Below, one piece after another: positions 622 to 55,904 of a stretch of 64,000 bases of DNA (positions are counted from its first letter, which is position 1; each line of letters begins with the position of its first letter). The translations under genes and the position numbers were made by a program. The stretch lies in the sequence record NC_022096.1; one strand, given 5' to 3'. The notes below the pieces were generated by a model that saw nothing but the letters and a program-made list of their open reading frames with translations, had not been told where the DNA came from and did no database searches.

Positions 622-641
622 GGAGCCAATGGCTCCCTTTT
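621..641 (+). terminator. rho-independent terminator
   Basis: GGGAGCC-AAT-GGCTCCC followed by TTTTCCTTT. Confidence 0.8.
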
Positions 642-688
642 CCTTTGGCCGTGGTAATTTCTCCGAATCGAACATGAGGAGATTTGCC

Positions 689-1192
689 ATGCTTGGATTA
701 TTCGGCAACGTGACTGTGAAGAAAGGCAAGCGGAAACGCAAATTCAAGAAGTACCGCCAGTACGAATACGATTTCTACGGGCGCAAGCTGGTGCTGCAAG
801 GCTACGAAGCACAAGCGCTTGAGTACCTTGTCGAAGTCGGCGGGTTCGATCCTGCGGACATCAAGACCGAGTGCGAGTTCGGCGACGCCCTGAACATCCG
901 TTACAAGTATTCGGGCAAATGGCGTTCCTACATGCCTGACATTTTCATCCGCAACCACAACATCATCGTCGAAGTGAAGTCGAAATCCACGATGGGCTTG
1001 TTGAACAACAAGAAGCGTGGTTGGTCGATGAACCAAGCCAAGGCGAAGGCGTGCCATGCCCGCGGTTTCAAGTTCTGCGTGCTTCTGATGACCGACTCAG
1101 GCAAGCGCATTCCGCTGCCGAAGAACTGGCCGCTGATGAAGAAGGCGGAGTGCCTGCGCATCATGCGTGAGGAGCTTGGAGTTCGCATCTAA
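689..1192 (+). CDS. PD-(D/E)XK (TnsA-N-like) endonuclease
   Basis: YMPDIFI...IIVEVKS catalytic-type motif; AGGAG RBS before ATG 689 (ORF-track start 629 lies inside the terminator); paralogous to 13438..14262. Confidence 0.7.
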   Translation: MLGLFGNVTVKKGKRKRKFKKYRQYEYDFYGRKLVLQGYEAQALEYLVEVGGFDPADIKTECEFGDALNIRYKYSGKWRSYMPDIFIRNHNIIVEVKSKSTMGLLNNKKRGWSMNQAKAKACHARGFKFCVLLMTDSGKRIPLPKNWPLMKKAECLRIMREELGVRI

Positions 1193-1213
1193 ACTGTAAA
1201 CTCCAGCTATACC
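1191..1213 (+). promoter_or_regulatory. putative phage promoter, class A (AAACTGTAAA-N7-TATACC)
   Basis: Intergenic; same motif and spacing recur at 3751, 8021 and 14355. Confidence 0.55.
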
Positions 1214-1231
1214 AACACAGAGCACACGGAC

Positions 1232-1879
1232 ATGAGCATTACCTACAAGTACGGAAACGGCAAGTTGATCGGCTACCGTTCCGTAGACAAGTTTCATGGT
1301 GGCCTGTCGTTCAAGTTTCATCCAGACGGCGGAGACTCGTTCGATCGGTTCATCGACAAGGGTTTGATTCTCGAAATCAAAACTCAGTACGGTGAGCAAA
1401 CGATCGCGCTGAAACGGAACGACTACCGCGTAGTTCCCGAGCTGTGGAACTGCACCACGCTGATTTTCCAGAGTAACGAGTTGGCGCGCTCGCTCCACCT
1501 TGCTCTCGACGTTGAAGGCTTCCTGCACGTTTCGACACACAGCACGGCGACCCTTGCCGCTGAGTTGGCGAGCACCATCACGCACCAGCTGGCAACACCG
1601 TTCATGAAGCGCAAGCAGATTGACGTGCATCTGCGTAGTGAGCCCAGCGTCATCGCGCATTCCATTCTTCGGTGCATCGGGCTCAACCGATTCGCACCCG
1701 GCATGGACGTCAAGACGTTCTACCAACAGCATACGCCAGAAGCAGCCTACTCTGCGCTGTGTGCGTGGCTGAGCAACAAAGACCTTCGCGTGAACTTCCT
1801 GCCGCATGATGGCACGAAGCGCGCCGCATTCGTTTCTCGCATTGGCGAGAATGTTTTGGAGTTCGCCGAACAGGCGTAA
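1232..1879 (+). CDS. hypothetical protein
   Basis: 215-aa ORF with GGAC before ATG; first gene after the class A motif. Confidence 0.7.
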   Translation: MSITYKYGNGKLIGYRSVDKFHGGLSFKFHPDGGDSFDRFIDKGLILEIKTQYGEQTIALKRNDYRVVPELWNCTTLIFQSNELARSLHLALDVEGFLHVSTHSTATLAAELASTITHQLATPFMKRKQIDVHLRSEPSVIAHSILRCIGLNRFAPGMDVKTFYQQHTPEAAYSALCAWLSNKDLRVNFLPHDGTKRAAFVSRIGENVLEFAEQA

Positions 1880-1895
1880 GCAAATAGGACCCATC

Positions 1896-2693
1896 ATGGC
1901 AGCCGTACGTAAACTATCCGACCTGAAAGAAGCTGGCTACAACCCGCGCGTCATCAGCAGCAAGCGCCTCAGCAACCTGCACAAGTCCATGACGACCTAC
2001 GGCGACCTGAGCGGCGTCGTGTTCAACGTCAAGACCAAGACCCTGATTTCCGGCCACCAGCGCCTCAAGCCGCTGCGTGATGCTGGCATCAAAGTCGAAA
2101 TCAAGACCAAGCCCATCACCGACAAGTTCGGCACTGTAGCCGAAGGCTACGTCGTCGCCAAGACCAGCGCCGGCGAGCTGCGCATCCCGTACCGCGAAGT
2201 ATCCTGGAGCGACAAGAAAGCCGAGTACGCTGCCAACATCGCTGCAAACGCTCACGGCGGTGACTTCGACCGCACCAAGCTCGGTACCCTGCTGGCTGCT
2301 CTGGAGAAGGGCAAGTCGTTCGACATCGACGTTCTGGGTCTCGATCCGTTGAGCGTGCGCAGCCTGATGCCGAAGATGCCGAACGTCGAAGGTAGCGGTG
2401 ACGATGACGGTGAATCGTTCCAAGAGTACGGCGAGGACAGCTTCGAGTTCGATCATCAGTGCCCGAAGTGCAAGTTCCAGTTCAACTCCAGCTCTGCAAG
2501 CAAGCCCAAGAAGGACAAGCCGCAACCCAAGGCGCCGAAGCTCGACGTGAAGAAGGCCAAAGCCGAAGTCAAAGCCAAGAAGATCAAGGCTGAGAAGAAG
2601 ACCGACAGCAAGGCCAAGTCCAGCGCCGCAAAAGAATCGCTGAAAAAAGCGAAGTCCAGTAAGCTCAAGGCCAAGATCAAGAAGGCCAAGTAA
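1896..2693 (+). CDS. ParB/Srx-like domain protein with CxxC and Lys-rich C-terminal tail
   Basis: YNPR...ISGHQRL ParB-N motif; CPKC; last ~60 aa Lys/Ala rich; AGGA RBS before ATG 1896. Confidence 0.75.
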   Translation: MAAVRKLSDLKEAGYNPRVISSKRLSNLHKSMTTYGDLSGVVFNVKTKTLISGHQRLKPLRDAGIKVEIKTKPITDKFGTVAEGYVVAKTSAGELRIPYREVSWSDKKAEYAANIAANAHGGDFDRTKLGTLLAALEKGKSFDIDVLGLDPLSVRSLMPKMPNVEGSGDDDGESFQEYGEDSFEFDHQCPKCKFQFNSSSASKPKKDKPQPKAPKLDVKKAKAEVKAKKIKAEKKTDSKAKSSAAKESLKKAKSSKLKAKIKKAK

Positions 2694-2704
2694 GTAGGTC
2701 AGCC

Positions 2705-3712
2705 ATGGAAAAGAAAATCGTCAAGATACCTTCGATGAAGAAGATCAACGCTCTTCCGAAGGCATTCAAAGGCATCAGTTCGTTCTCCGGTTGTGGCGGG
2801 AGCTCCACTGGTGTGAAGATGGCTGGCGTCCAAGTGCTGCTCGCAACCGAGTTCATCAAGCCAGCCATCGAAACCTACGAGAAGAACCACAAAGGCACCA
2901 TCGTCATCGGTGAAGACATTCGCAAGGTCGACTGGGAGTCGTGGCGCAAGGAGCTCAAGCTCAAGCGCGGCCAGCTGGACTTCTCCGAAGGCAGTCCGCC
3001 GTGCAAGTCCTTCTCGACCTCTGGCACTGGCAGTGACGACTGGGGCAAGGAGAAACTCTACTCTGAGAACGTCTACCAGCGCACCGATGACCTCTTCTAC
3101 GAGGAAATGCGCAAGCTGGAAGCGTTCATGCCCAAGGTCTTCGTCTGCGAGAACGTCAAGGGCATGGTTGAGGGTGACGCCAAGGGTTACTTCATCGAAA
3201 TCCTGCGTGACCTTAAAGCAATCGGGTATAGCGTGAAGGCGCAGGTGTTGAACGCTGCCCGTCTCGACGTACCCCAAGCCCGCGAGCGCGTGATCTTCGT
3301 TGGTGTGCGTAACGACTTGGTGAAGAAAGGCTTTGAGCCTGTGTTCCCCAAAGCGAAGCCGTACGAGGTGAACGTCAACGACGTCCTACCTCACATTGCG
3401 TACCTCAAGTCGAAGTACCGAGGCGACATCAAGTACGTCCCAGCTTCGATCCCGAGTCCTACGATCGTGGCGAGCGATGGTACCAACAGTGAGACTGCCG
3501 GCTTCTCGTCTGGCGGCTTCATTGAGACTGTCGATGGCGAGCGCCGCAAGTACACCATCGACGAGTTGAAGAAGATTTTCACCTTCCCGGATGACTTCAT
3601 CTTCACTGGTACCTACAAGCAGCAGTTCGAGCGTCTCGGCCGCTCAGTTCCGCCACTCATGATGTATCGCGTAGTCGCGGAGCTTCGCCGCCAGATTCTG
3701 GAGAAGCTGTAA
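2705..3712 (+). CDS. DNA cytosine-C5 methyltransferase family protein, candidate carboxymethyltransferase
   Basis: Motifs I FSGCGG, IV GSPPCKSFS, VI ENVKG, VIII QARERV, X GRSVPP (Asn replaced by Arg313). Confidence 0.93.
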   Translation: MEKKIVKIPSMKKINALPKAFKGISSFSGCGGSSTGVKMAGVQVLLATEFIKPAIETYEKNHKGTIVIGEDIRKVDWESWRKELKLKRGQLDFSEGSPPCKSFSTSGTGSDDWGKEKLYSENVYQRTDDLFYEEMRKLEAFMPKVFVCENVKGMVEGDAKGYFIEILRDLKAIGYSVKAQVLNAARLDVPQARERVIFVGVRNDLVKKGFEPVFPKAKPYEVNVNDVLPHIAYLKSKYRGDIKYVPASIPSPTIVASDGTNSETAGFSSGGFIETVDGERRKYTIDELKKIFTFPDDFIFTGTYKQQFERLGRSVPPLMMYRVVAELRRQILEKL

Positions 3713-3717
3713 CCCAA

Positions 3718-3740
3718 GGGAGTCTTCGGACTCCCTTTTT
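3718..3740 (+). terminator. rho-independent terminator
   Basis: GGGAGTC-TTCG-GACTCCC-TTTTT. Confidence 0.9.
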
Positions 3741-3750
3741 ATGGCCTCCG

Positions 3751-3773
3751 AAACTGTAAATCCACAGTATAAT
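3751..3773 (+). promoter_or_regulatory. putative phage promoter, class A (AAACTGTAAA-N7-TATAAT)
   Basis: Directly after the terminator, 20 nt before the cmoA-like ATG. Confidence 0.6.
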
Positions 3774-3793
3774 CCATTGGTTGGAGCCTAAAC

Positions 3794-4570
3794 ATGAGCC
3801 AAGAACCTGTAGTAGACAACCACGTCCCAGGCGAACGCTGGGAGTTCAACGAGGACGTAGCCAAGCAGTTCGACCTGATGCTGGAGAAGTCGATCCCCGG
3901 CTACGGACAGATGCGTGATCTGGTGTATCGCATCGGCAAGCGTTTCGTTCAGTCGCCGTCGAACGTCATCGATCTGGGTGCTAGCCGTGGTGAAGCCGTG
4001 GCGCGCTTTATCGCTGAGTTCCCGCACTCTGACTTCTTCCTCTCGGAAGTTTCCGAGCCAATGCTGGCTGAAATGCACGAGCGCTTTGCTGATCTGCCGA
4101 ACGTGTTTCCTGTGAGCTACGATCTGCGCAAGACGTCCGAGCAGATTGCCACAGCGATTCGTAATCCGAAGTTCGGCATGGCCCACGCTGGGCTGAACCC
4201 TGTTGCGTCGCACACTACGCTGGTGCTGTCTATTCTCACCATGATCTTCGTGCCCATCAACTTCCGCCCGAGCATCTACAAGGGCGTGTACGACGGACTG
4301 GCCCGCGGCGGCGCGTTCATCGTTGTCGAGAAGGTGCTTGGCAACTCCGCCGCCATGCAAGAGCTGCTGGTTGACGTGTACCACGAGTACAAGCACGACA
4401 ACGGCTACAGCTGGGAAGCCATCGAGCGCAAACGCGCCGCCCTCGAAGGCGTGCAAGTACCTGTGAGCCATGAGACCAACATCGATATGTTGCGTGCCGC
4501 TGGCTTCCGCAACGTCGAATCGTTCTGGCGCAACATGAATTTCGTGGCCTATCTGGCTATCAAGGATTAA
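3794..4570 (+). CDS. cmoA: CmoA-like carboxy-S-adenosyl-L-methionine synthase
   Basis: WEFNEDVAKQFDLMLEKSIPGY, IDLGASRG, GGAFIVVEK, KRAALEG (Arg214) and AGFRNVESFWRNMNF all match recalled CmoA blocks; GGAG RBS. Confidence 0.85.
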   Translation: MSQEPVVDNHVPGERWEFNEDVAKQFDLMLEKSIPGYGQMRDLVYRIGKRFVQSPSNVIDLGASRGEAVARFIAEFPHSDFFLSEVSEPMLAEMHERFADLPNVFPVSYDLRKTSEQIATAIRNPKFGMAHAGLNPVASHTTLVLSILTMIFVPINFRPSIYKGVYDGLARGGAFIVVEKVLGNSAAMQELLVDVYHEYKHDNGYSWEAIERKRAALEGVQVPVSHETNIDMLRAAGFRNVESFWRNMNFVAYLAIKD

Positions 4571-4572
4571 CG

Positions 4573-5025
4573 ATGCGTGAACTCAAGCTACTCCGCAAGC
4601 GCGTAAAGCAGGCTTGGGCGGCAGAAGCTGACCTGAGTCCGAATGAGCGAGAACTGCACCAGTGGCAGTTCCTGTCGATGCAGAGCAACGTGCCCTATGT
4701 CGTCGGTAAGGGTGCCGCCAACACGTTCTTCTATCGTGTCGGTACTACTGGTGAAATGACCTACGTGATGCCAGACGAAATGTTTGCCATCATGGACAAG
4801 TGGGTCAACTCTAGCTTTGCTTTGTTCGCCATCACCAAGACGCGCGACATCAAAGACGCCCCGTGCTCCACGGACATCAACGTCCTGCTGCAAAAGACGA
4901 AGGACAAGTACGTCGGTTATTTCATTGTCGGTATCACACCCGACCAGCGTGTAGTTCGCCTGCATGTATTGAAAAGCGGACTCCGCAAAAACCAATGGGT
5001 GCCCTTCAAGCCGAAGAAACGGTAA
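4573..5025 (+). CDS. hypothetical protein in the modification cluster
   Basis: 150-aa ORF starting 2 nt after the cmoA-like stop. Confidence 0.7.
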   Translation: MRELKLLRKRVKQAWAAEADLSPNERELHQWQFLSMQSNVPYVVGKGAANTFFYRVGTTGEMTYVMPDEMFAIMDKWVNSSFALFAITKTRDIKDAPCSTDINVLLQKTKDKYVGYFIVGITPDQRVVRLHVLKSGLRKNQWVPFKPKKR

Positions 5026-5034
5026 GGAAAGACA

Positions 5035-5859
5035 ATGGACCAGAAGACTCGTTCCAAGAAATTGCGCCGAGCGCTCGTTGCGCAGGCGAAGTCGGTGGGC
5101 GTCAAGAATGTAGCCGTTCCCATGAGCAGCGGTGTGGACAGTCACTGTGCGCTGTTCGCCTGCCTCGAAGCTGGGTTGAGCCCGCACGTCTACTCGTTCC
5201 ATCTGGACGGCGTTGAAAGCCGTGACGTGCGTGTCGCCGAGAAGACAGCGGAAGCCTTCGATCTGCCGTTCACCAAAGTGACGCTACCCAATGGCAAGAA
5301 GCAACTCATCAAGGACGTCATCGAGCTTGCCCGTTTCGGCTGCCGTAGCAAGACGGACTTCGAGTGCTTCTGGCCAATGTGGCACTTGCTGCCGAAGATC
5401 AAGCAGAAGGCTTTCTTCACCGGCCATGGTGCCGACAGCCTGTACTGCCTTAGCCGCAAAGCTGTTCAACACTACGCCGGCCGCGAAGATGAATTTCGTA
5501 GGCTGGCTTTCTCGTCCAACAAAGCCTTCCAGAAGGGCTTGATCGAGAAGTGGTGTGAGACTAAGGGCAAAGGCAAAATCTACTGCCCGATCTTCTTCAA
5601 CCAGCAGACGCTTGCAATCTTCCAAGGCGCCAAGCCTGCTGATCTGAACAAGCCGATCCAGAAAGCCGTGAGCCGCATGGCGTTCGAGGAATACTTCGAG
5701 CATGTGCGCGTCTACGTTCACCAACCTTTCCAGTTGGGTGACACCGGCATCAAGATCGGCTTCGAGCAGCATCTGCTGGACAGCGAACTCAACACCAAGT
5801 CCTACAAAAGCGTTGTCGGCATTTATAATGAGCTGGTGCGCAACTACGGGAAGAAGTGA
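5035..5859 (+). CDS. stand-alone asparagine-synthetase-like (PP-loop) ATP-dependent amide ligase
   Basis: VAVPMSSGVDS PP-loop and FFTGHGADSLY matching the AsnB synthetase-domain TGxGADE motif; no N-terminal glutaminase domain; AGGA RBS. Confidence 0.75.
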   Translation: MDQKTRSKKLRRALVAQAKSVGVKNVAVPMSSGVDSHCALFACLEAGLSPHVYSFHLDGVESRDVRVAEKTAEAFDLPFTKVTLPNGKKQLIKDVIELARFGCRSKTDFECFWPMWHLLPKIKQKAFFTGHGADSLYCLSRKAVQHYAGREDEFRRLAFSSNKAFQKGLIEKWCETKGKGKIYCPIFFNQQTLAIFQGAKPADLNKPIQKAVSRMAFEEYFEHVRVYVHQPFQLGDTGIKIGFEQHLLDSELNTKSYKSVVGIYNELVRNYGKK

Positions 5860-6473
5860 CCATGTTCATCCAAAACTATATCCACTACAAGACCGATCCC
5901 GCCTCGTGGGTGCTGAACACGCTGTTCCCGCTGACTGCGGAAGAGTACGGCGACCAGCAAGCTTGGCTCGATGCTGGAGCTCCAGACGAACCTCCGATGA
6001 CTCGCGTCCTGAATGCTGAGCAAGATCGACTGTTCAAGCTGGTACACAAGCACGCCAGTGACTACTACGCGCAGAACAAGCCGTACCTGAACTCCGTCGC
6101 AATCATGATGGCAATGACCGCGCTCTACGGTGAGCAGCAAGTTCTCGGCCATTCGTATCGCGGTGCATTCCTGTTTGCCGGCAACTGCGAAGCGATGTTC
6201 AGTCGTCTGGTGATGCAAGGTCAAGGTGCAATGGATTTCATGCGCTACAACCTTGCACAAGAAGTAACTGGTGACCCGATGCTCGCGGTAATTCGCGCCG
6301 AGCAACTGTGCCACAAGTACGGCCTGCGTAATCACCGCATGCCAACCGGTGACGGTACCGACATCGTGTTCAGCCTTGAGCCGATCGCCAACCCGGTGTT
6401 CGATAACGTCAAATACATTCCATCCGTCGCTGGCTACTATACCATCGTCGGCAAAGGTGCAGCGAGGGATTAA
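5856..6473 (+). CDS. hypothetical protein
   Basis: 205-aa ORF, GTGA overlap with the upstream stop (alternative ATG 5862). Confidence 0.7.
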   Translation: MTMFIQNYIHYKTDPASWVLNTLFPLTAEEYGDQQAWLDAGAPDEPPMTRVLNAEQDRLFKLVHKHASDYYAQNKPYLNSVAIMMAMTALYGEQQVLGHSYRGAFLFAGNCEAMFSRLVMQGQGAMDFMRYNLAQEVTGDPMLAVIRAEQLCHKYGLRNHRMPTGDGTDIVFSLEPIANPVFDNVKYIPSVAGYYTIVGKGAARD

Positions 6474-6475
6474 CC

Positions 6476-7537
6476 GTGGCCAAGAAAGACAAACTCAAGA
6501 AGAAAAAAGGTGATGTCAAGATCGATGTCACCGTCGAGAAGAAAAAGAAAAAGAAGGCGAAAGCCGAGGTAATGCCGATCGCGAAGGACAGCTACATCAT
6601 CGTTCGTGTCGGTAGCAAGCACAAGCTGGCACTCGCCATCAACCCGGAACGCGGTCGCGCTGTCATCGACGAAACTCTGGCGGACGACGAGCCACAGCAC
6701 ATCGAGTTCGACGAGAACAACCTGGTGTGCAACCTGGGCACCAAGCCCAAGGGTGGCGCTGCCTTCGGCGTGCGTATCGAACCCTACGTCTCCAGCGTCG
6801 AATCCAAGTACGGCCAGATGCACTTCTTCCGCGAGCTGGGTGACCTGGAGAAGAAAGCACTCAAGCGCGCACTGCGTCGCACCTACGACGGCATGCTGGA
6901 ACAGAACCTGAACGTCTTCCCGTTCACCCAGATGAAGATTACGCCGAAGCGCGGCAAGTACGCGGGTATGTATCTGTTCCGTCGCAAGTCTGGCGAGGTC
7001 TGGGATGCCGTTGTACTGCACCCGGAGACGTTCGAGGACACCAAGTTCAACGAGTACCTGCTGTACCACGAATACGGTCACGCTGTCTGGTACAAGATGA
7101 TCACTGCCAGCTACAAGGCCAAGTGGATCAAGCTCTACCACAAGCGCCTGGAGCTGATGAACATCCTGAAAGATCGTCTTGAGCCGATGCTGGACGAACT
7201 GCTCAAGTTCGCCGGCAGTCTCAAGGACTTCTACAAGGAACTCGAAGAGGAAGACCGCCTCGTGTTCCGTGAGGTGCTGTCGCACTACAAGCGCTACCAC
7301 AAGATGGATGGCTACTCGATGGACATCCTGCACATGGAAGACACTGAGAAGTTTGCTTCGATGTGGCCGAAGCGTGCAACTCTCGTTGAATCGCGCCCTG
7401 ACCTGAGCGAATATGCGATGGTCAAGCCTGAGGAGTTCTGGGCAGAAGCGTTTGCGTTCCACATGACTGGGCGCAAAATGCCCAAGGACATTACCAAAGC
7501 CATGGAGAAAACGCTGACTGCTTTGCAGAGCGTGTAG
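6476..7537 (+). CDS. putative zinc metallopeptidase (HExxH) with basic N-terminus
   Basis: YHEYGHAVW and downstream YAMVKPEEFWAEAF; N-terminal poly-Lys stretch. Confidence 0.6.
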   Translation: MAKKDKLKKKKGDVKIDVTVEKKKKKKAKAEVMPIAKDSYIIVRVGSKHKLALAINPERGRAVIDETLADDEPQHIEFDENNLVCNLGTKPKGGAAFGVRIEPYVSSVESKYGQMHFFRELGDLEKKALKRALRRTYDGMLEQNLNVFPFTQMKITPKRGKYAGMYLFRRKSGEVWDAVVLHPETFEDTKFNEYLLYHEYGHAVWYKMITASYKAKWIKLYHKRLELMNILKDRLEPMLDELLKFAGSLKDFYKELEEEDRLVFREVLSHYKRYHKMDGYSMDILHMEDTEKFASMWPKRATLVESRPDLSEYAMVKPEEFWAEAFAFHMTGRKMPKDITKAMEKTLTALQSV

Positions 7538-14351: not shown

Positions 14352-14373
14352 AAGTGTAAATTAGTCGCATACG
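14352..14373 (+). promoter_or_regulatory. putative phage promoter, class A variant (AAGTGTAAA-N7-CATACG)
   Basis: Intergenic, 21 nt before the sbcD-like ATG. Confidence 0.45.
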
Positions 14374-31561: not shown

Positions 31562-31571
31562 AAACTGTAAA
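31562..31571 (+). promoter_or_regulatory. class A motif core AAACTGTAAA upstream of the DNA polymerase
   Basis: Identical 10-mer to 1191 and 3751, directly after a terminator; downstream TATA element degenerate. Confidence 0.5.
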
Positions 31572-31603: not shown

Positions 31604-34600
31604 ATGCCTAAGTGCGATCATGTCGAGTTGGACTACAAATACTCCAAGAAGTTTCGCAGAGTCGAGAACAACTTCGGGTATGTCCGCTTGGCCAAATCGG
31701 TAGTCAAGAAGCCCAAGGGCAAGATTCTGTTTGTGTTGGACTACGTTCCGACCGAAGACCTGCGCAGTGGCCGTATGCTCAGCGGTGCCACTGGCCAACT
31801 GTTCGATAACGTCATCAAAGTAGCCGAGCAGTATTACAACAGCGACCACGAACTCGCCGATTATTCGTGGCTGGCAATATCGTTCCACGCGTTCAAGACG
31901 GCAGGCCAACCCGAGCAGTTTCGCTCTGACGCCAAGCTGGAGTTTGCGGAGCGCCTGAATTTCATCATCACCGAATACAAGCCAGATGTCGTAGTGACCT
32001 TCGGACAAGACCCGTACAAGGCACTGAACGGCGAGTTGATTGCCTCGAAGTACCGCGACCGAAAGGGTATCCACTACGAGCACTTCTACGGCGTACCAAT
32101 CGAGACGACCGTAAGCAAGGGTGAGAAGTCGCACACGTTCAAGCACGTTCCGACGCTCAGCCTGAACACCCTGGTAAACGCCAGCGGCAAAGGCGAGCCA
32201 ATGTACCTCGCTGGGTATGTTGCGCGTAACCTGATGACTGCGCTGTATGGCGGCGAGTTGCGGTACAAGATTCCTGAGTTGAAGTACAAGGTCAGGCTGG
32301 TCGACACTATCGACAAGTTTGACGAAATGCTCGACACGATCACCGAAGCCAAGGAAGTGGCAATCGACACGGAGACCAAGAACCTCATGCGGATCACAAA
32401 CCGCATGTTGACGATTCAGTTTGCCGTGGATGAAAAGGCTGCGTACATTCTGCCCATCGGACACAAGGACAGTCCTTGGTTGCCCGACGAGTTGAAGTAC
32501 ATCAAGAAGAAGTTGCGCCTGTACTTCGAGCGCAAGAACAAGAACAAGCAGCACATCTACGCCAACGCCGTGTTCGACCTGAACAGGATTCGCGTGGACC
32601 TTGGAGTTCGCCATTTCAAGAATGCTGTCTGGGACGTGTTCGCTGGTGAGTTCGGGCACGACGAAAACATGAAGGTGTTGGAGGGTATCACTGGCGGTAC
32701 CTACTACACCCTGCTCAACATTTGTATGCAGTACGGTTGTACCGCGTACTACGAGTCCGACTTCGGTAAGGACAAGCGGGCAACCATCGAACAGGCCGAC
32801 TTGGATAAGTCCCTGCTCAATTACTGCGCACTGGACGTCGTTACGCTCATCCACATCAAGCGCCTGCAGATTCAGCGCGGTAAGGACTACGGCTACAAGA
32901 AGTACCAGAGCATCGTGAAAGAGCAGATCAGTGATATGCTCCACGTGTTCTCGTGCCTTGAGGTCAACGGGTGCAAGACGGACATCAACTGGCTGTTCTA
33001 CCTGAAGTCCAAAGACAGCCCGATCTTGAAGCACCGTGCCGACGTCATCAAGGCACTCAACGAGACCAAGGGCGTACAGCGCGCCAACGCCAAGATGTCG
33101 AAGCAGTCTGGCGCGCCGCAACTCGGCCTGTTTGGAAAGACCAAGCTCAACATCTTCGACATCGGCAAGAAGGCACACTTGAACATGCTCATGTTCGACG
33201 TGCTCAAGCTCAAGCCGCTGTCTACGGGTAAGGGCGGTCAGGGCAACATCGACAAGGACTTCCAGAAGAAGTATGCGGACATACCGGAAGTGGCTCTGTA
33301 CAACGAGCTACAGAAGGTCAAGAAAATCTACAACAGCTATGTCAAGGCGTTTGTCAAGCAATGGGGTTCCGACTCCGACATGCGCTCCGACTCCTGCATT
33401 CGTCCGTTCTTCCAGTTCCGAGACGTGGTAACAGGCCGTACCTCGGCGAAGAAACCATCGCTGCACCAAATCCCAAGCAGAAACGAAATCACGGAGTTCA
33501 TCAAGAAGATGTTCCCCGGCCGTGCCGACTTGGGTAAGATCATCAAGCGCCTGTTCATTGCGGACAAGGGTCGCCTGATCTTGAAGATCGACTATGCGGC
33601 ACACGAAGTTCGTGGTTGGTCGATCATCACTGGTGACCAAGAAGTGGCAGACCTGTTCTGGCACGGCTTGCGTATGCGTAACCAGTACAAGCTCTACCCA
33701 ACGGAAGAGCTGGCGAAAAAGATTGACATGGAAGGTGACGTCCATAAGATCAACGCCGCGTACTTCTTCGGTATGAAGATCGAGGACGTAGATAAGCCGA
33801 AGCGTAACAGCGTTAAGCAGGTAATCTTCGGTCTGATTTACCAGCAGGGCATGGAGGGTGTTGCCAAGTCCACAGGGCAAACCCTTGAGGCGATCAAGTC
33901 TCTGGTCAAGGCGTTCTTCAAGCGCTTCCCGATCGGTGCTGGCTGGTTCGACAAGATCAAGGAGAAAGCTGCCAAGCAGTTGTATGTCGAATCGCCCCTG
34001 GGCCGTCGCCGTAACCTGTGGGCATTCCTGATCCCGAAAGATGCCAAGTCGTTCGAGGGTGTCTACGCTGCCACTGGCCGTCGTGCTGTGAACTCGCCAA
34101 TTCAGGGCATGGGTTCTGACTTCCTGGTGTCTGGCGCTCGGGAAATCGAGAACATGAAGTATGCCCACTACCGCGAGACTGGCCACTACCCGGACTTCTA
34201 CATGTGCAACTCTGTACACGACTCCTTGGAGTTTAGCGTTGCGTATGAGGACGTTTGGCTTGCGATTCGGATGATCGAACACGGCCTGACTTACGGCGTC
34301 ATGAGTGTCATGGAGAAACGTCATGGTCTGCGCTTCCCAGTGCCGCTGGAAATCGACTTTGAAATCGGCGCCAACATCCGTGACTGCAAAGGCTGGGATT
34401 ACAGCCTTGCCAATCTGGATGAGTTGATCGAAAAAGCTCTGGTACAGCAGCGCGATGAATTCGGCTACGAAGTGGACGTTGAGAAGACACTCAAGCAGAT
34501 CACCCGTGGTCAGTACGAGCACATGCCTGACTGGGCCAAGAAGCAAGCCTGGAACCTGAAACTCAAGATGAAGGGTATGAAGAAAGACCCGCGTGCCGCC

Positions 34601-54629: not shown

Positions 54630-55904
54630 ATGAAACTTGCAGTCTACGCCATTGCGAAGAACGAAGCCAAACACGTCGAGCGCTGGTACGAGTCGGTAAA
54701 AGACGCCGACGAAATCATCGTGCTGGACACCGGCTCCACCGATGGAACCCAGAAGCTACTGAGCGATCTGGGCGTGCGTGTTGCCTCGATGGCTTTTGAA
54801 CCTTTCCGATTCGACACCGCCCGAAACGCGGCACTGAATCTGGTGAGCCTCGACGCCGACTACTGCATGTTCATCGACTTGGATGAGACCATGCCCAAGG
54901 GTAGCATCGCTGCCATTCGCAAGGCCATCAACAAGACTCAGAAGGACATGTACGCCCTGCGCCTGGTCTTCAAGTTTGACCACAAACGCCAGCCGATCGT
55001 GTCGTACCCGCGCGAAGCCGTACACCGCCGCAACGCTTTCTACTGGAAGTACCCTGTACACGAACTGCTCGCCTGCCATCAGGGCGAATACTCGTATGAG
55101 GAGCTCAACGTCCAGGTGTTCCACGAGCCGGATGAAACGAAAGAGCGCTCCTCGTATCTGAGCCTGCTGGAAACAGCCGTCGAAGAAAACCCGAACGATC
55201 CGCGTCAGGCGCAGTATCTGGGCCGTGAGTACATGTACCAAGGCCGCCCGTTCGATGCTCAGATGTGGCTCAAGCGCCACATTCAAATGGAACCACACGG
55301 TCCGTTCCGTTCAGAGTCTGCGTCGTACATTGCCCAGTGTTTCCTGATGCTCGAAGGGCAAGTCGAAGAGGCTATCGACGAAGCTGAGGCTTGGTACTTC
55401 CGAGCCATCGCCGAGTTCAATAGTGCCCGTGAACCGTTCTGTGAACTGGCGGACCTTTACTTCAAGTGCCATGAGTTCGAGAGTGCCATCGGCATGTTGA
55501 AGTCGGCCATGCGTATTCCAGCGAAGCCGAATGTCGCCATGATCAGCCGAGACGAGTTCTACTCGCACTGGCCGCATCACATGCTCGCTGCCTGCTACTT
55601 CAACATCGGCAATCGCACGGCAGCAAAATACCACATCCAAGAAGCGATGAAGTCTGCTGGCACTCTCAGCGGTCACCTCGCAAACGACATCGTGAAAATT
55701 CTGGGGCTCGAAAATGCTACTCAGTCTCTCCTTGGCGTCGAAGCCAGCTCGGGTGTCGAAGGACACGTTCCTGAAGATGGGCCCGAGCAAACAGAAGCAG
55801 TATCTGACCCACTACCCTCGGAGCAGCCATCGCTTTCTTCTCGCCAAGAAAGCCAAAGCTCCGAAACCGGAAGTGCAGCCGCGTCGTCGCCTGTCTCGGA
55901 ATGA
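54630..55904 (+). CDS. glycosyltransferase family 2 with TPR-like C-terminal repeats
   Basis: AIAKNE, VLDTGSTDGT, ARNAAL, FIDLDE (DxD), PVHE; helical YLGREY/AWY.RAI repeats. Confidence 0.85.
   Translation: MKLAVYAIAKNEAKHVERWYESVKDADEIIVLDTGSTDGTQKLLSDLGVRVASMAFEPFRFDTARNAALNLVSLDADYCMFIDLDETMPKGSIAAIRKAINKTQKDMYALRLVFKFDHKRQPIVSYPREAVHRRNAFYWKYPVHELLACHQGEYSYEELNVQVFHEPDETKERSSYLSLLETAVEENPNDPRQAQYLGREYMYQGRPFDAQMWLKRHIQMEPHGPFRSESASYIAQCFLMLEGQVEEAIDEAEAWYFRAIAEFNSAREPFCELADLYFKCHEFESAIGMLKSAMRIPAKPNVAMISRDEFYSHWPHHMLAACYFNIGNRTAAKYHIQEAMKSAGTLSGHLANDIVKILGLENATQSLLGVEASSGVEGHVPEDGPEQTEAVSDPLPSEQPSLSSRQESQSSETGSAAASSPVSE

Follow-up and report, generated by a model that had tools for sequence, protein, structure and literature searches.

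A candidate carboxy-SAM-dependent cytosine modification cluster around the CmoA homologue gp308 of Pseudomonas phage PaBG

INTRODUCTION

A pathway that places a carboxymethyl group on DNA cytosines was described in the Synechococcus phage S-B43 by Yang et al. (Nat Commun 2025; PMC12783734). In that phage, CmoA makes carboxy-S-adenosylmethionine (Cx-SAM) from S-adenosylmethionine (SAM) and prephenate, CmoX uses Cx-SAM, not SAM, to form 5-carboxymethylcytosine in DNA, and CmoY, a ligase resembling asparagine synthetase, joins glycine to the new carboxyl group. In a survey of phage sequences, the same study identified 5,615 candidate CmoX genes; a CmoA gene was nearby for 4,257 of these, and a gene for a ParB-domain protein was often present as well (PMC12783734). 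The bacterial counterpart is the CmoA/CmoB pathway, which leads to 5-carboxymethoxyuridine at position 34 of tRNA (cmo5U34); Pseudomonas aeruginosa has a cmoA-cmoB operon, and its CmoA is 52.6% identical to that of Escherichia coli (PMC12288880). Here, we analyze gp308, a CmoA homologue encoded by Pseudomonas phage PaBG, together with the gene cluster in which it lies.

PaBG (NC_022096/KF147891; 258,139 bp; genus Baikalvirus) infects P. aeruginosa PAO1. The window that we analyzed is a 64,000-nucleotide stretch of this genome in which a position equals the position in the PaBG record minus 124,000 (100% identity); all features described below are on its + strand. The open reading frame (ORF) at 3794..4570, which encodes 258 amino acids (aa), was confirmed and corresponds to gp308, annotated in the PaBG record as “tRNA methyltransferase” or “tRNA (cmo5U34)-methyltransferase.”

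We report that gp308 is encoded among homologues of CmoX (gp309) and CmoY (gp306) and that, by the published sequence criteria, the PaBG cluster is a CmoA-CmoX-CmoY system. It is an undescribed member of an already published system (December 2025), with lineage-specific accessory genes; a comparative review of jumbo phages does not mention the pathway. We propose, with a probability of roughly 0.8, that gp308 would feed Cx-SAM to gp309 for cytosine carboxymethylation of phage DNA, that gp306 would then ligate an amine, and that the product would shield the DNA from host nucleases. The proposal draws on homology, on diagnostic residues, on the order of the genes and the persistence of the cluster in relatives, and on the statistics of a hairpin and a recurring motif. 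A first-pass annotation of the window had read gp308 as a phage CmoA that serves not CmoB and tRNA but a neighboring methyltransferase. That core idea agrees with the diagnostic residues of gp309 and with homology to the S-B43 trio; the DNA pathway was left unnamed there, and cmo5U, the product it looked to, appears to be the wrong end use.

RESULTS

gp308 resembles CmoA in sequence, cofactor-binding residues, and fold

The assignment of gp308 to the CmoA family in the first-pass annotation was upheld. Among proteins of solved structure, gp308 matched Haemophilus influenzae YecO (1im8; E value of 4.5e-26) and E. coli CmoA (4gek; E value of 2.2e-25) over nearly its full length, and the NCBIfam CmoA model TIGR00740 matched with an E value of 7.6e-38. 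Identity was 29% over 235 aa to the S-B43 enzyme, SpCmoA (E value of 1e-31), and 30% to E. coli CmoA.

In E. coli CmoA, Arg199 forms a salt bridge to the carboxylate of Cx-SAM (PMC3663124; PMC4482062), and the SAM moiety is contacted by Tyr39, Asp62, Gly64, Ser66, Ala70, Asp89, Asn90, Asp117, Asn132, and Phe137 (PMC3663124). In an alignment of 61 family members, gp308 keeps the carboxylate-binding residue as Arg214 and most of the other contacts as Y37, D60, G62, S64, A68, E85 (for Asp89), D110, and F152. The tyrosine of the PGY motif and the arginine of the KR motif singled out in the first-pass annotation are thus Tyr37 (E. coli Tyr39) and Arg214. In the Arg199 column of the alignment, Arg is found in 48 sequences, Lys in 7, Ala in 4, and Ser and Glu in 1 each. 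The sequence with Glu is SpCmoA, and because that enzyme is active, Arg at this position is not strictly required for activity. SpCmoA (L002:4392-5087) has Lys residues on the flanks of this Glu, whereas PaBG and most phage-type CmoAs have Arg; the cyanophage enzyme may therefore bind the carboxylate in a different arrangement.

An AlphaFold (AF2) model of gp308, built with 57 homologues in the alignment, had a predicted local distance difference test score (pLDDT) of 91.5. It was closest to E. coli CmoA (E value of 3.5e-21; template modeling [TM] score by target, 0.87 to 0.88), and its top matches in the Protein Data Bank (PDB) were 4iwn, 4gek, and 1im8 (TM score by target, 0.86 to 0.88). Judged from its sequence, gp308 is very probably a CmoA-type synthase that makes Cx-SAM from SAM and prephenate.

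The neighbors of gp308 are homologues of CmoX and CmoY

Directly upstream of cmoA, gp309 (2705..3712; 335 aa) is a homologue of the CmoX-type DNA cytosine-C5 carboxymethyltransferase. It matched Pfam DNA_methylase (1e-51), and its best solved relative was SpCmoX (8yf3; E value of 5.4e-56), followed by the ordinary methylase M.HaeIII (3.4e-22). Identity to SpCmoX was 35% (E value of 3e-66). In the CmoX structure 8YF3, Arg350 contacts the carboxymethyl group, where M.HhaI has Asn304, and an SPPC motif together with Arg350 was the sequence criterion for CmoX in the survey (PMC12783734). We aligned seven sequences, comprising gp309, SpCmoX, four PaBG-like metagenomic homologues, and one homologue from a cyanobacterial plasmid. 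All SpCmoX residues named in that study as Cx-SAM binding or catalytic were invariant: F27, E49, F50, D71, S97-P98-P99-C100, and R313 of gp309 correspond to F25, E47, F48, D69, S95-P96-P97-C98, and R350 of SpCmoX. By that survey criterion, gp309, with its SPPC motif and with Arg313 where SpCmoX has Arg350, would be classed as a CmoX. In SpCmoX, Arg350 goes with exclusive use of Cx-SAM (PMC12783734); gp309, which has this Arg, would need a source of Cx-SAM, and the host CmoA could in principle supply it.

The gene directly upstream of cmoX encodes a ParB-like protein, gp310 (1896..2693), which matched PHROG 620, “ParB-like partition protein” (E value of 3.4e-38), and PHROG 498, a family of fusions of ParB with methyltransferases (1.1e-20); Pfam ParBc was not detected in it. 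ParBc proteins adjoin many of the CmoX genes in the survey (PMC12783734). In the metagenomic lineages L004, L006, and L009, a protein of the size of gp310 is encoded just before the methyltransferase, a likeness by size and position; in Erwinia phage Y3, the gene just before the methyltransferase is annotated as encoding a ParB-like protein. The start of the ParB-like ORF is uncertain and could be 1806 or the annotated 1896.

Downstream of cmoA by 465 nucleotides (nt), gp306 (5035..5859; 274 aa) is a homologue of the CmoY-type ATP-dependent amide ligase. It matched Pfam Asn_synthase (4.9e-06) and consists of the asparagine-synthetase C-terminal domain only, without the glutaminase domain. Identity to SpCmoY was 33% over nearly the whole length (E value of 2e-35), and the PP-loop (S31-x-G33-x-D35-S36) and 25 other columns were invariant among gp306, SpCmoY, and five relatives.

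Could gp308 be an ordinary methyltransferase?

Several observations weigh against a Cx-SAM pathway in PaBG. gp308 scored below the NCBIfam equivalog cut-offs (130.5 versus 193.3 bits for TIGR00740; 95.3 versus 285 bits for NF011995). In the 61-sequence alignment, two of the E. coli cofactor contacts were lost (Asn90 to Val86 and Asn132 to Ile147), and E. coli Gln136 is Ile151 in gp308. An insert of about 25 residues (about 113 to 140), which the model shows as a pair of short helices plus a loop following strand four, is absent from both E. coli CmoA and SpCmoA. By fold, CmoA and the small-molecule methyltransferases CysG and BelI (TM score, 0.88 to 0.89) are not distinguishable. Among the partners, gp309 and SpCmoX differ in the variable region between the conserved motifs, the probable determinant of the target sequence; this region is 37 residues shorter in gp309, so that the GC target of SpCmoX is not transferable to gp309. 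The amine joined by SpCmoY is likewise not transferable to gp306, because identity is only 33%. The PaBG genome paper mentions neither DNA modification nor roles for these genes, and PaBG is not named in the paper of Yang et al. or in its supplement text (PMC12783734).

The points that concern gp308, together with its GenBank label of “tRNA methyltransferase,” would suit an ordinary SAM-dependent methyltransferase of CmoA-like fold that acts on a small molecule or a nucleic acid and forms no Cx-SAM; these points include the substitutions at Asn90, Asn132, and Gln136 and the insert, which is near the substrate cleft, and CysG and BelI are structurally about as similar to gp308 as CmoA is. In sequence, however, the similarity to CmoA (1e-26) is far above that to CysG or BelI (1e-8 to 3e-11). 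Because the fold is not discriminating, the argument that gp308 is a CmoA rests on sequence, Arg214, and context. The low model scores are shared by the active SpCmoA, which reached 115.6 bits with TIGR00740 and 102 bits with NF011995, compared with 455 and 582 bits for E. coli CmoA. Since the validated SpCmoA scores still lower than gp308 with TIGR00740 and is even further from canonical CmoA, the equivalog cut-off appears to mark canonical tRNA-pathway orthologues rather than activity.

The first-pass annotation had also raised the concern that the LNFTLQF block of E. coli CmoA reads LSILTMIF in gp308 (residues 145 to 152). The alteration is real, but as a sign of a defect it largely falls away. 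Asn132, the sole side-chain contact in the block, is Leu in the active SpCmoA, and the remaining cofactor contacts there involve main-chain atoms (PMC3663124; PMC4482062). The Gln136 column holds Ile in 26 of the 61 sequences and Gln in 24; Ile occurs in about half of the phage-type family, and it is coupled to an Asn that replaces Glu five positions on (Ile151/Asn156 in PaBG). We therefore take LSILTMIF as the mark of a subfamily. Given also that Arg214 is conserved and that the neighboring gp309 has the Arg tied to exclusive Cx-SAM use in SpCmoX (PMC12783734), we judge it very improbable that gp308 is an ordinary methyltransferase.

A role in tRNA modification is improbable

As reported in the first-pass annotation, the 64-kb window contains no tRNA gene and no cmoB. 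Family scans of the window ORFs from 629 to 6473 gave no CmoB-type match, and there was no match in PaBG when 50,697 phage records were searched by tblastn with CmoB of E. coli; the sole match was a 3.4-kb fragment, evidently of the Salmonella chromosome. Beyond the window, PaBG has five tRNA genes 1.2 to 3.8 kb upstream of the window start, including tRNA-Thr(UGU) and tRNA-Ala(UGC), which are 5 to 8 kb upstream of cmoA. The predicted tRNA-Ala(UGC) gene (record positions 122295-122388; L001:5496-5589) spans 94 nt and has its anticodon at position 37. Such a length is unusual for a tRNA-Ala, and an insertion or a miscall may account for it.

These tRNA genes raise the question of whether gp308 serves translation by providing more Cx-SAM to the host CmoB, which would increase cmo5U34 on the phage tRNA-Thr(UGU) or tRNA-Ala(UGC) or on host tRNAs. 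P. aeruginosa tRNAs with these anticodons carry cmo5U or its methyl ester (mcmo5U), and the host has CmoB (PMC12288880). The tRNA-Thr gene is also preceded, at a distance of about 90 nt, by a copy of the promoter-like motif described below. The host, however, already has cmoA (PMC12288880), and among the 50,697 records no phage cmoB was found, barring the Salmonella fragment. The position of gp308 between a CmoX-type enzyme and a CmoY-type ligase, a linkage kept in relatives, and the presence of the same type of CmoA in phages whose characterized product is modified DNA (PMC12783734) also speak against a translational role. We consider such a main role highly unlikely; a benefit to translation is possible as a side effect.

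We also considered whether gp308 is a recent capture of the host cmoA and rejected this origin. Identity to E. coli CmoA is 30% for gp308 and 52.6% for the host enzyme (PMC12288880), the GC content of the cluster (0.54 to 0.585) equals the genome mean (0.558), and gp308 falls in a clade of metagenomic phage-contig proteins.

cmoA appears to head a second transcription unit

A terminator between the methyltransferase gene and cmoA had been called in the first-pass annotation, and the sequence supports it. An intrinsic-terminator-like hairpin with a T-run (3716..3740) begins 4 nt past the cmoX stop codon and has a 9-bp stem (3716-3724/3729-3737) with a TTCG loop. Its folding energy of -21.1 kcal/mol corresponds to a z score of -4.1, and none of 200 shuffled sequences folded as well. 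A consensus terminator scan missed the hairpin; the stem takes up two Ts of the T-run.

The promoter-like motif AAACTGTAAA lies ten bases past the hairpin (3751..3760), 43 nt before the cmoA ATG. A second copy (1191..1200) is found 40 nt before the ATG at 1232 and heads the unit of gp311, the ParB-like gene, and cmoX. The window has 3 exact copies, where 0.08 would be expected; each is intergenic and on the + strand. In the whole PaBG genome, which we assembled from annotated stretches, the degenerate form AA[CG]TGTAAA[CT] occurs 11 times in 258 kb, compared with 0.57 +/- 0.8 expected under a first-order Markov model. The copies are at window positions 1191-1200, 3751-3760, 14352-14361, and 31562-31571 and at PaBG record positions 33597, 34524, 88292, 90326, 107705, 120137, and 187681; the region from 188 to 258 kb has none. 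All 11 are co-oriented with the local genes, most are 25 to 49 nt before a start codon, and 4 directly follow a hairpin with a T-run. One copy, about 90 nt upstream of the tRNA-Thr gene, precedes the tRNA cluster.

Between the motif and cmoA are a TATAAT hexamer that is a possible -10 element (3768..3773) and a Shine-Dalgarno sequence, GGAG (3783..3786), 7 nt before the start codon. A sigma-70 promoter was rejected here: a consensus scan found none, the TATAAT has no -35 partner, and it is not conserved after the other motif copies. The “class A motif” of the first-pass annotation is most likely the AAACTGTAAA copy at 3751-3760; as a recurring, co-oriented motif it stands. The claim that cmoA has its own promoter is plausible from the hairpin and the recurring upstream motif. 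PaBG encodes a sigma-70-like factor (PMC7412058). The distribution of AA[CG]TGTAAA[CT] is plausibly that of a class of phage promoters. The genes behind it may form a single temporal class in PaBG, and gp118, a phage sigma factor, is perhaps involved in recognizing it.

The genes that follow are tightly packed, with gaps of 2, 9, and 2 nt in the series cmoA-gp307-cmoY-gp305. A layout of two adjacent units under the same motif class is plausible, the first comprising gp311, the ParB-like gene, cmoX, and the terminator and the second comprising cmoA, gp307, cmoY, and gp305. cmoA is therefore predicted from the layout to be cotranscribed with the ligase gene and not with the transferase gene. The first-pass annotation went further and suggested that cofactor supply is regulated separately; this finds no support beyond the separate transcription units. 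Because the same motif class also precedes the methyltransferase unit (1191), the two units are probably in the same temporal class.

The cluster is conserved, with variations, in related jumbo phages

Proteins 53 to 80% identical to gp308 are encoded on metagenomic contigs of 150 to 260 kb that resemble PaBG-like jumbo phages. PaBG itself was not found in public sequencing runs (the best run contained 0.47 of the sampled words); only relatives were found, as assembled contigs. In the four lineages that we examined, a C5-methylase homologue, an asparagine-synthase-like gene, and CmoA stay together, while their order and the extra genes vary. The extra genes include a 2-oxoglutarate (2OG)-Fe(II) oxygenase in L006 (6231-6884), a DUF1611 P-loop protein in L008 (5160-6188), and, in L009 (5427-6955, 7822-9024), an arginase-family hydrolase and a 400-aa protein with a Thoeris anti-defense Tad2-like domain, encoded right after cmoA. 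L099 (2415-4392) has DUF1611 and a pyridoxal phosphate (PLP) protein resembling the alanine racemase N-terminal domain. A possible GNAT-like neighbor is found beside the arginase-family hydrolase, and L010:6945-7583 is also among the loci of inserted genes. Because relatives insert different enzymes into the cluster, several final cytosine adducts are suggested across jumbo phages.

Among the 50,697 phage records, 70 had CmoA-like genes and 63 had close CmoX-like genes. Most of the CmoA-like records (61 of 70) belong to host groups that also have a CmoX-like gene, namely Erwinia (48), Synechococcus (6), Dickeya (2), Pseudomonas (2), Streptomyces (2), and Yersinia (1). Erwinia phage Y3 has CmoA, the asparagine-synthase-like gene, and a 2OG oxygenase at 12.6 kb and the ParB-like gene with a 709-aa methylase at 30 kb.

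In a maximum likelihood tree of 113 CmoA homologues, gp308 was placed apart from E. coli CmoA, in a clade of 17 sequences with a Shimodaira-Hasegawa-like approximate likelihood ratio test (SH-aLRT) support of 97; the other 16 members are all metagenomic homologues. Both E. coli CmoA and SpCmoA were on very long branches. CmoA of the phage type (37 to 45% identity, closer to that type than to E. coli CmoA) was common in genomes and metagenome-assembled genomes of Actinomycetota, Chloroflexota, Verrucomicrobiota, Planctomycetota, and cyanobacteria. Among the best 80 of these bacterial loci (L016-L095), 16 had a CmoX-like gene within 4 kb, 3 had a CmoY-like gene, and 1 had a weak CmoB-like match. 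The remaining 64 are without a CmoX-like gene within 4 kb.

gp307 and gp305 are candidate accessory proteins

The gene for gp307 (4573..5025; 150 aa) starts 2 nt past the cmoA stop codon. Homologues are encoded directly 3' of the CmoA gene in the close relative L004/L005 and in the more distant lineages L006, L008, and L099 (36 to 54% identity among those aligned; L099 was found by profile search). Among phage isolates, homologues occur only in CmoA-carrying jumbo phages (53 records). In 51 Erwinia, Dickeya, and Yersinia jumbo-phage records, the homologue is within the cmoA cluster; in the Erwinia phages it is 2 to 5 kb downstream of cmoA.

The AF2 model of gp307 is confident (pLDDT, 91.2) and shows a mixed alpha/beta fold. 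It had no significant structural match in the PDB, AFDB clusters, or BFVD (best Foldseek E values of 0.29 and 0.04), and a comparison with VIA gave a Z score of 6.6 over the N-terminal half only, which is background level. No Pfam, NCBIfam, or PHROG family matched gp307, and the ESM Atlas gave no function. An exhaustive profile search retrieved 100 representatives, all unannotated; three are longer proteins and a few are fragments, but nearly all are stand-alone proteins of about 110 to 180 aa. The most conserved feature is an invariant loop, V44-G45-K46...A49-N50-T51. A role as a chorismate mutase supplying prephenate was rejected on the basis of the mixed alpha/beta model and the lack of a match to any enzyme.

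gp307 is absent from S-B43, and the three S-B43 enzymes are by themselves enough to recreate the modification in E. coli (PMC12783734); we therefore regard it as an accessory of the PaBG-like lineage. The gene for gp305 (5862..6473; 203 aa) starts 2 nt past the cmoY stop codon at its annotated ATG; a mechanical ORF listing instead gives a GTG start at 5856, which overlaps the cmoY stop codon. gp305 had no lead from Pfam, PHROG, or the Atlas, and a homologue at the same position was found only in the closest relative (29% identity).

We speculate that PaBG-like jumbo phages have an extended carboxymethylcytosine pathway in which gp307 would be a new component and the amine ligated by a divergent CmoY, acting alone or with gp305, would not be glycine, so that an undescribed cytosine adduct would result. 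This extension is tentative, and we would not expect it to hold in full. Within it, gp307 could hand over Cx-SAM from CmoA to CmoX, relieve product inhibition of CmoA, or act as a DNA-targeting factor.

Other features of the locus

On the + strand, the genes run in the order DUF7487 endonuclease, gp311, ParB-like gp310, gp309, gp308, gp307, gp306, and gp305. The first encodes a TnsA/Vsr/MutH-like endonuclease (629-1192, annotated as 689-1192; DUF7487 match, E value of 4.9e-14). It lies just upstream of the ParB-CmoX block, and the metagenomic relatives L004/L005, L008, and L009 also encode a DUF7487 protein upstream of theirs. The endonuclease is a candidate for a nuclease that might distinguish modified from unmodified DNA. 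The next gene, gp311 (1232..1879; 215 aa), is hypothetical in the PaBG record and had no match in Pfam or PHROG; it is the first gene of the upstream unit.

Downstream of gp305 is a peptidase gene with an uncertain start (GTG at 6476 or the annotated 6572). PaBG also has an annotated beta-1,4-glycosyltransferase, gp263, at window positions 54630-55904 (record positions 178630-179904), and a dCTP deaminase and a thymidylate synthase are encoded elsewhere in the genome.

DISCUSSION

A predicted route from carboxy-SAM to hypermodified cytosine

The cluster suggests the following course of events, in which each enzymatic step, like the modification of PaBG DNA itself, its target sequence, and its amine, is predicted from the genes. 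During infection, gp308 would convert host SAM and prephenate into Cx-SAM. gp309 would use this cofactor, with the Arg that replaces the usual motif X Asn accommodating the carboxylate, and would put a carboxymethyl group on C5 of cytosines in phage DNA, yielding 5-carboxymethylcytosine. gp306 would then adenylate that carboxyl and join an amine to it (glycine in the case of the characterized homologue), and the hypermodified cytosine would shield phage DNA from host nucleases. cmoA would head its tight unit behind the terminator and the promoter-like motif, with the ParB-like gene and cmoX in the preceding unit.

Another use of the same reaction would be as a SAM sink, in which conversion of SAM to Cx-SAM would starve restriction-modification, BREX, and SAM-derived signals, an effect like that of phage SAM lyases. 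This was raised as an open possibility by Yang et al., and the kcat of SpCmoA is tenfold that of E. coli CmoA (PMC12783734). As the main function of gp308, depletion of SAM seems to us very doubtful, for it leaves unexplained the conserved linkage of cmoA to a methyltransferase homologue with the Cx-SAM-binding Arg and to a ligase. As a secondary effect, it is compatible with DNA modification.

If DNA modification is indeed the role of the cluster, three labels used for PaBG and for some 50 jumbo phages related to it, “tRNA methyltransferase,” “DNA cytosine methylase,” and “asparagine synthase,” most likely describe one DNA hypermodification pathway and should be corrected. The reading predicts DNA derived from 5-carboxymethylcytosine in a cultivable phage of P. 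aeruginosa PAO1, where the sole characterized example so far is a cyanophage. PaBG would then be a genetically tractable host system in which to set the modification against restriction, CRISPR, and other defenses. The oxygenase, DUF1611, arginase-family, and PLP-enzyme-like genes in the clusters of relatives point to variety in the decoration step, and gp307 offers a conserved protein, without a recognizable fold relative, that is tied to cmoA.

Comparison with known systems

The closest described system is that of S-B43. In both phages, the same three enzyme families are encoded in one cluster, the ligase is without a glutaminase domain, and PaBG has a ParB-like gene beside cmoX, as do many of the surveyed clusters. 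Identity between the two phages is only 29% for CmoA, 35% for CmoX, and 33% for CmoY, and the gene order is CmoA-CmoY-CmoX in S-B43, in contrast to ParB-CmoX followed by CmoA-gp307-CmoY-gp305 in PaBG. The PaBG CmoA differs from SpCmoA in its insert of about 25 residues, its Ile151/Asn156 variant, and the canonical Arg214, where SpCmoA has Glu. PaBG also has two extra small genes (gp307 and gp305), and its system is known from genes alone.

Jumbo phages of Erwinia, Dickeya, and Yersinia (for example, vB_EamM_Y3 and AD1) are likewise known from genes alone. Their CmoA is 40 to 43% identical to gp308, and they share with PaBG the pair of CmoA and the asparagine-synthase-like gene, the ParB-like gene with a C5-methyltransferase homologue, and the gp307 homologue. 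Their methyltransferase, however, is 709 aa long and encoded about 18 kb from cmoA, and their cluster includes a 2OG-Fe(II) oxygenase or DUF1611, neither of which is present in that of PaBG.

With the bacterial CmoA/CmoB pathway, gp308 shares the family, the fold, the Tyr39 and Arg199 residues, and the predicted reaction, in which SAM and prephenate yield Cx-SAM and phenylpyruvate. PaBG differs in that it is without a cmoB partner and in that the acceptor is likely to be a DNA cytosine rather than 5-hydroxyuridine in tRNA. A parallel to gp309 is found in the engineered methyltransferase M.MpeI N374K, in which a basic residue in place of the motif X Asn lets a C5-methyltransferase use Cx-SAM to form 5-carboxymethylcytosine (PMC12783734); that enzyme is engineered, has Lys rather than Arg, is specific for CG, and relies on the CmoA of its E. 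coli host. The glucosylated 5-hydroxymethylcytosine of phage T4 and the derivatives of 5-hydroxymethyluracil resemble the predicted PaBG modification in their two stages, a handle at C5 followed by decoration, and in their presumed antirestriction role. In those systems, the handle is a hydroxyl made at the nucleotide level before DNA synthesis, whereas in PaBG a carboxyl would be placed on polymerized DNA from a dedicated cofactor (general knowledge and PMC12783734).

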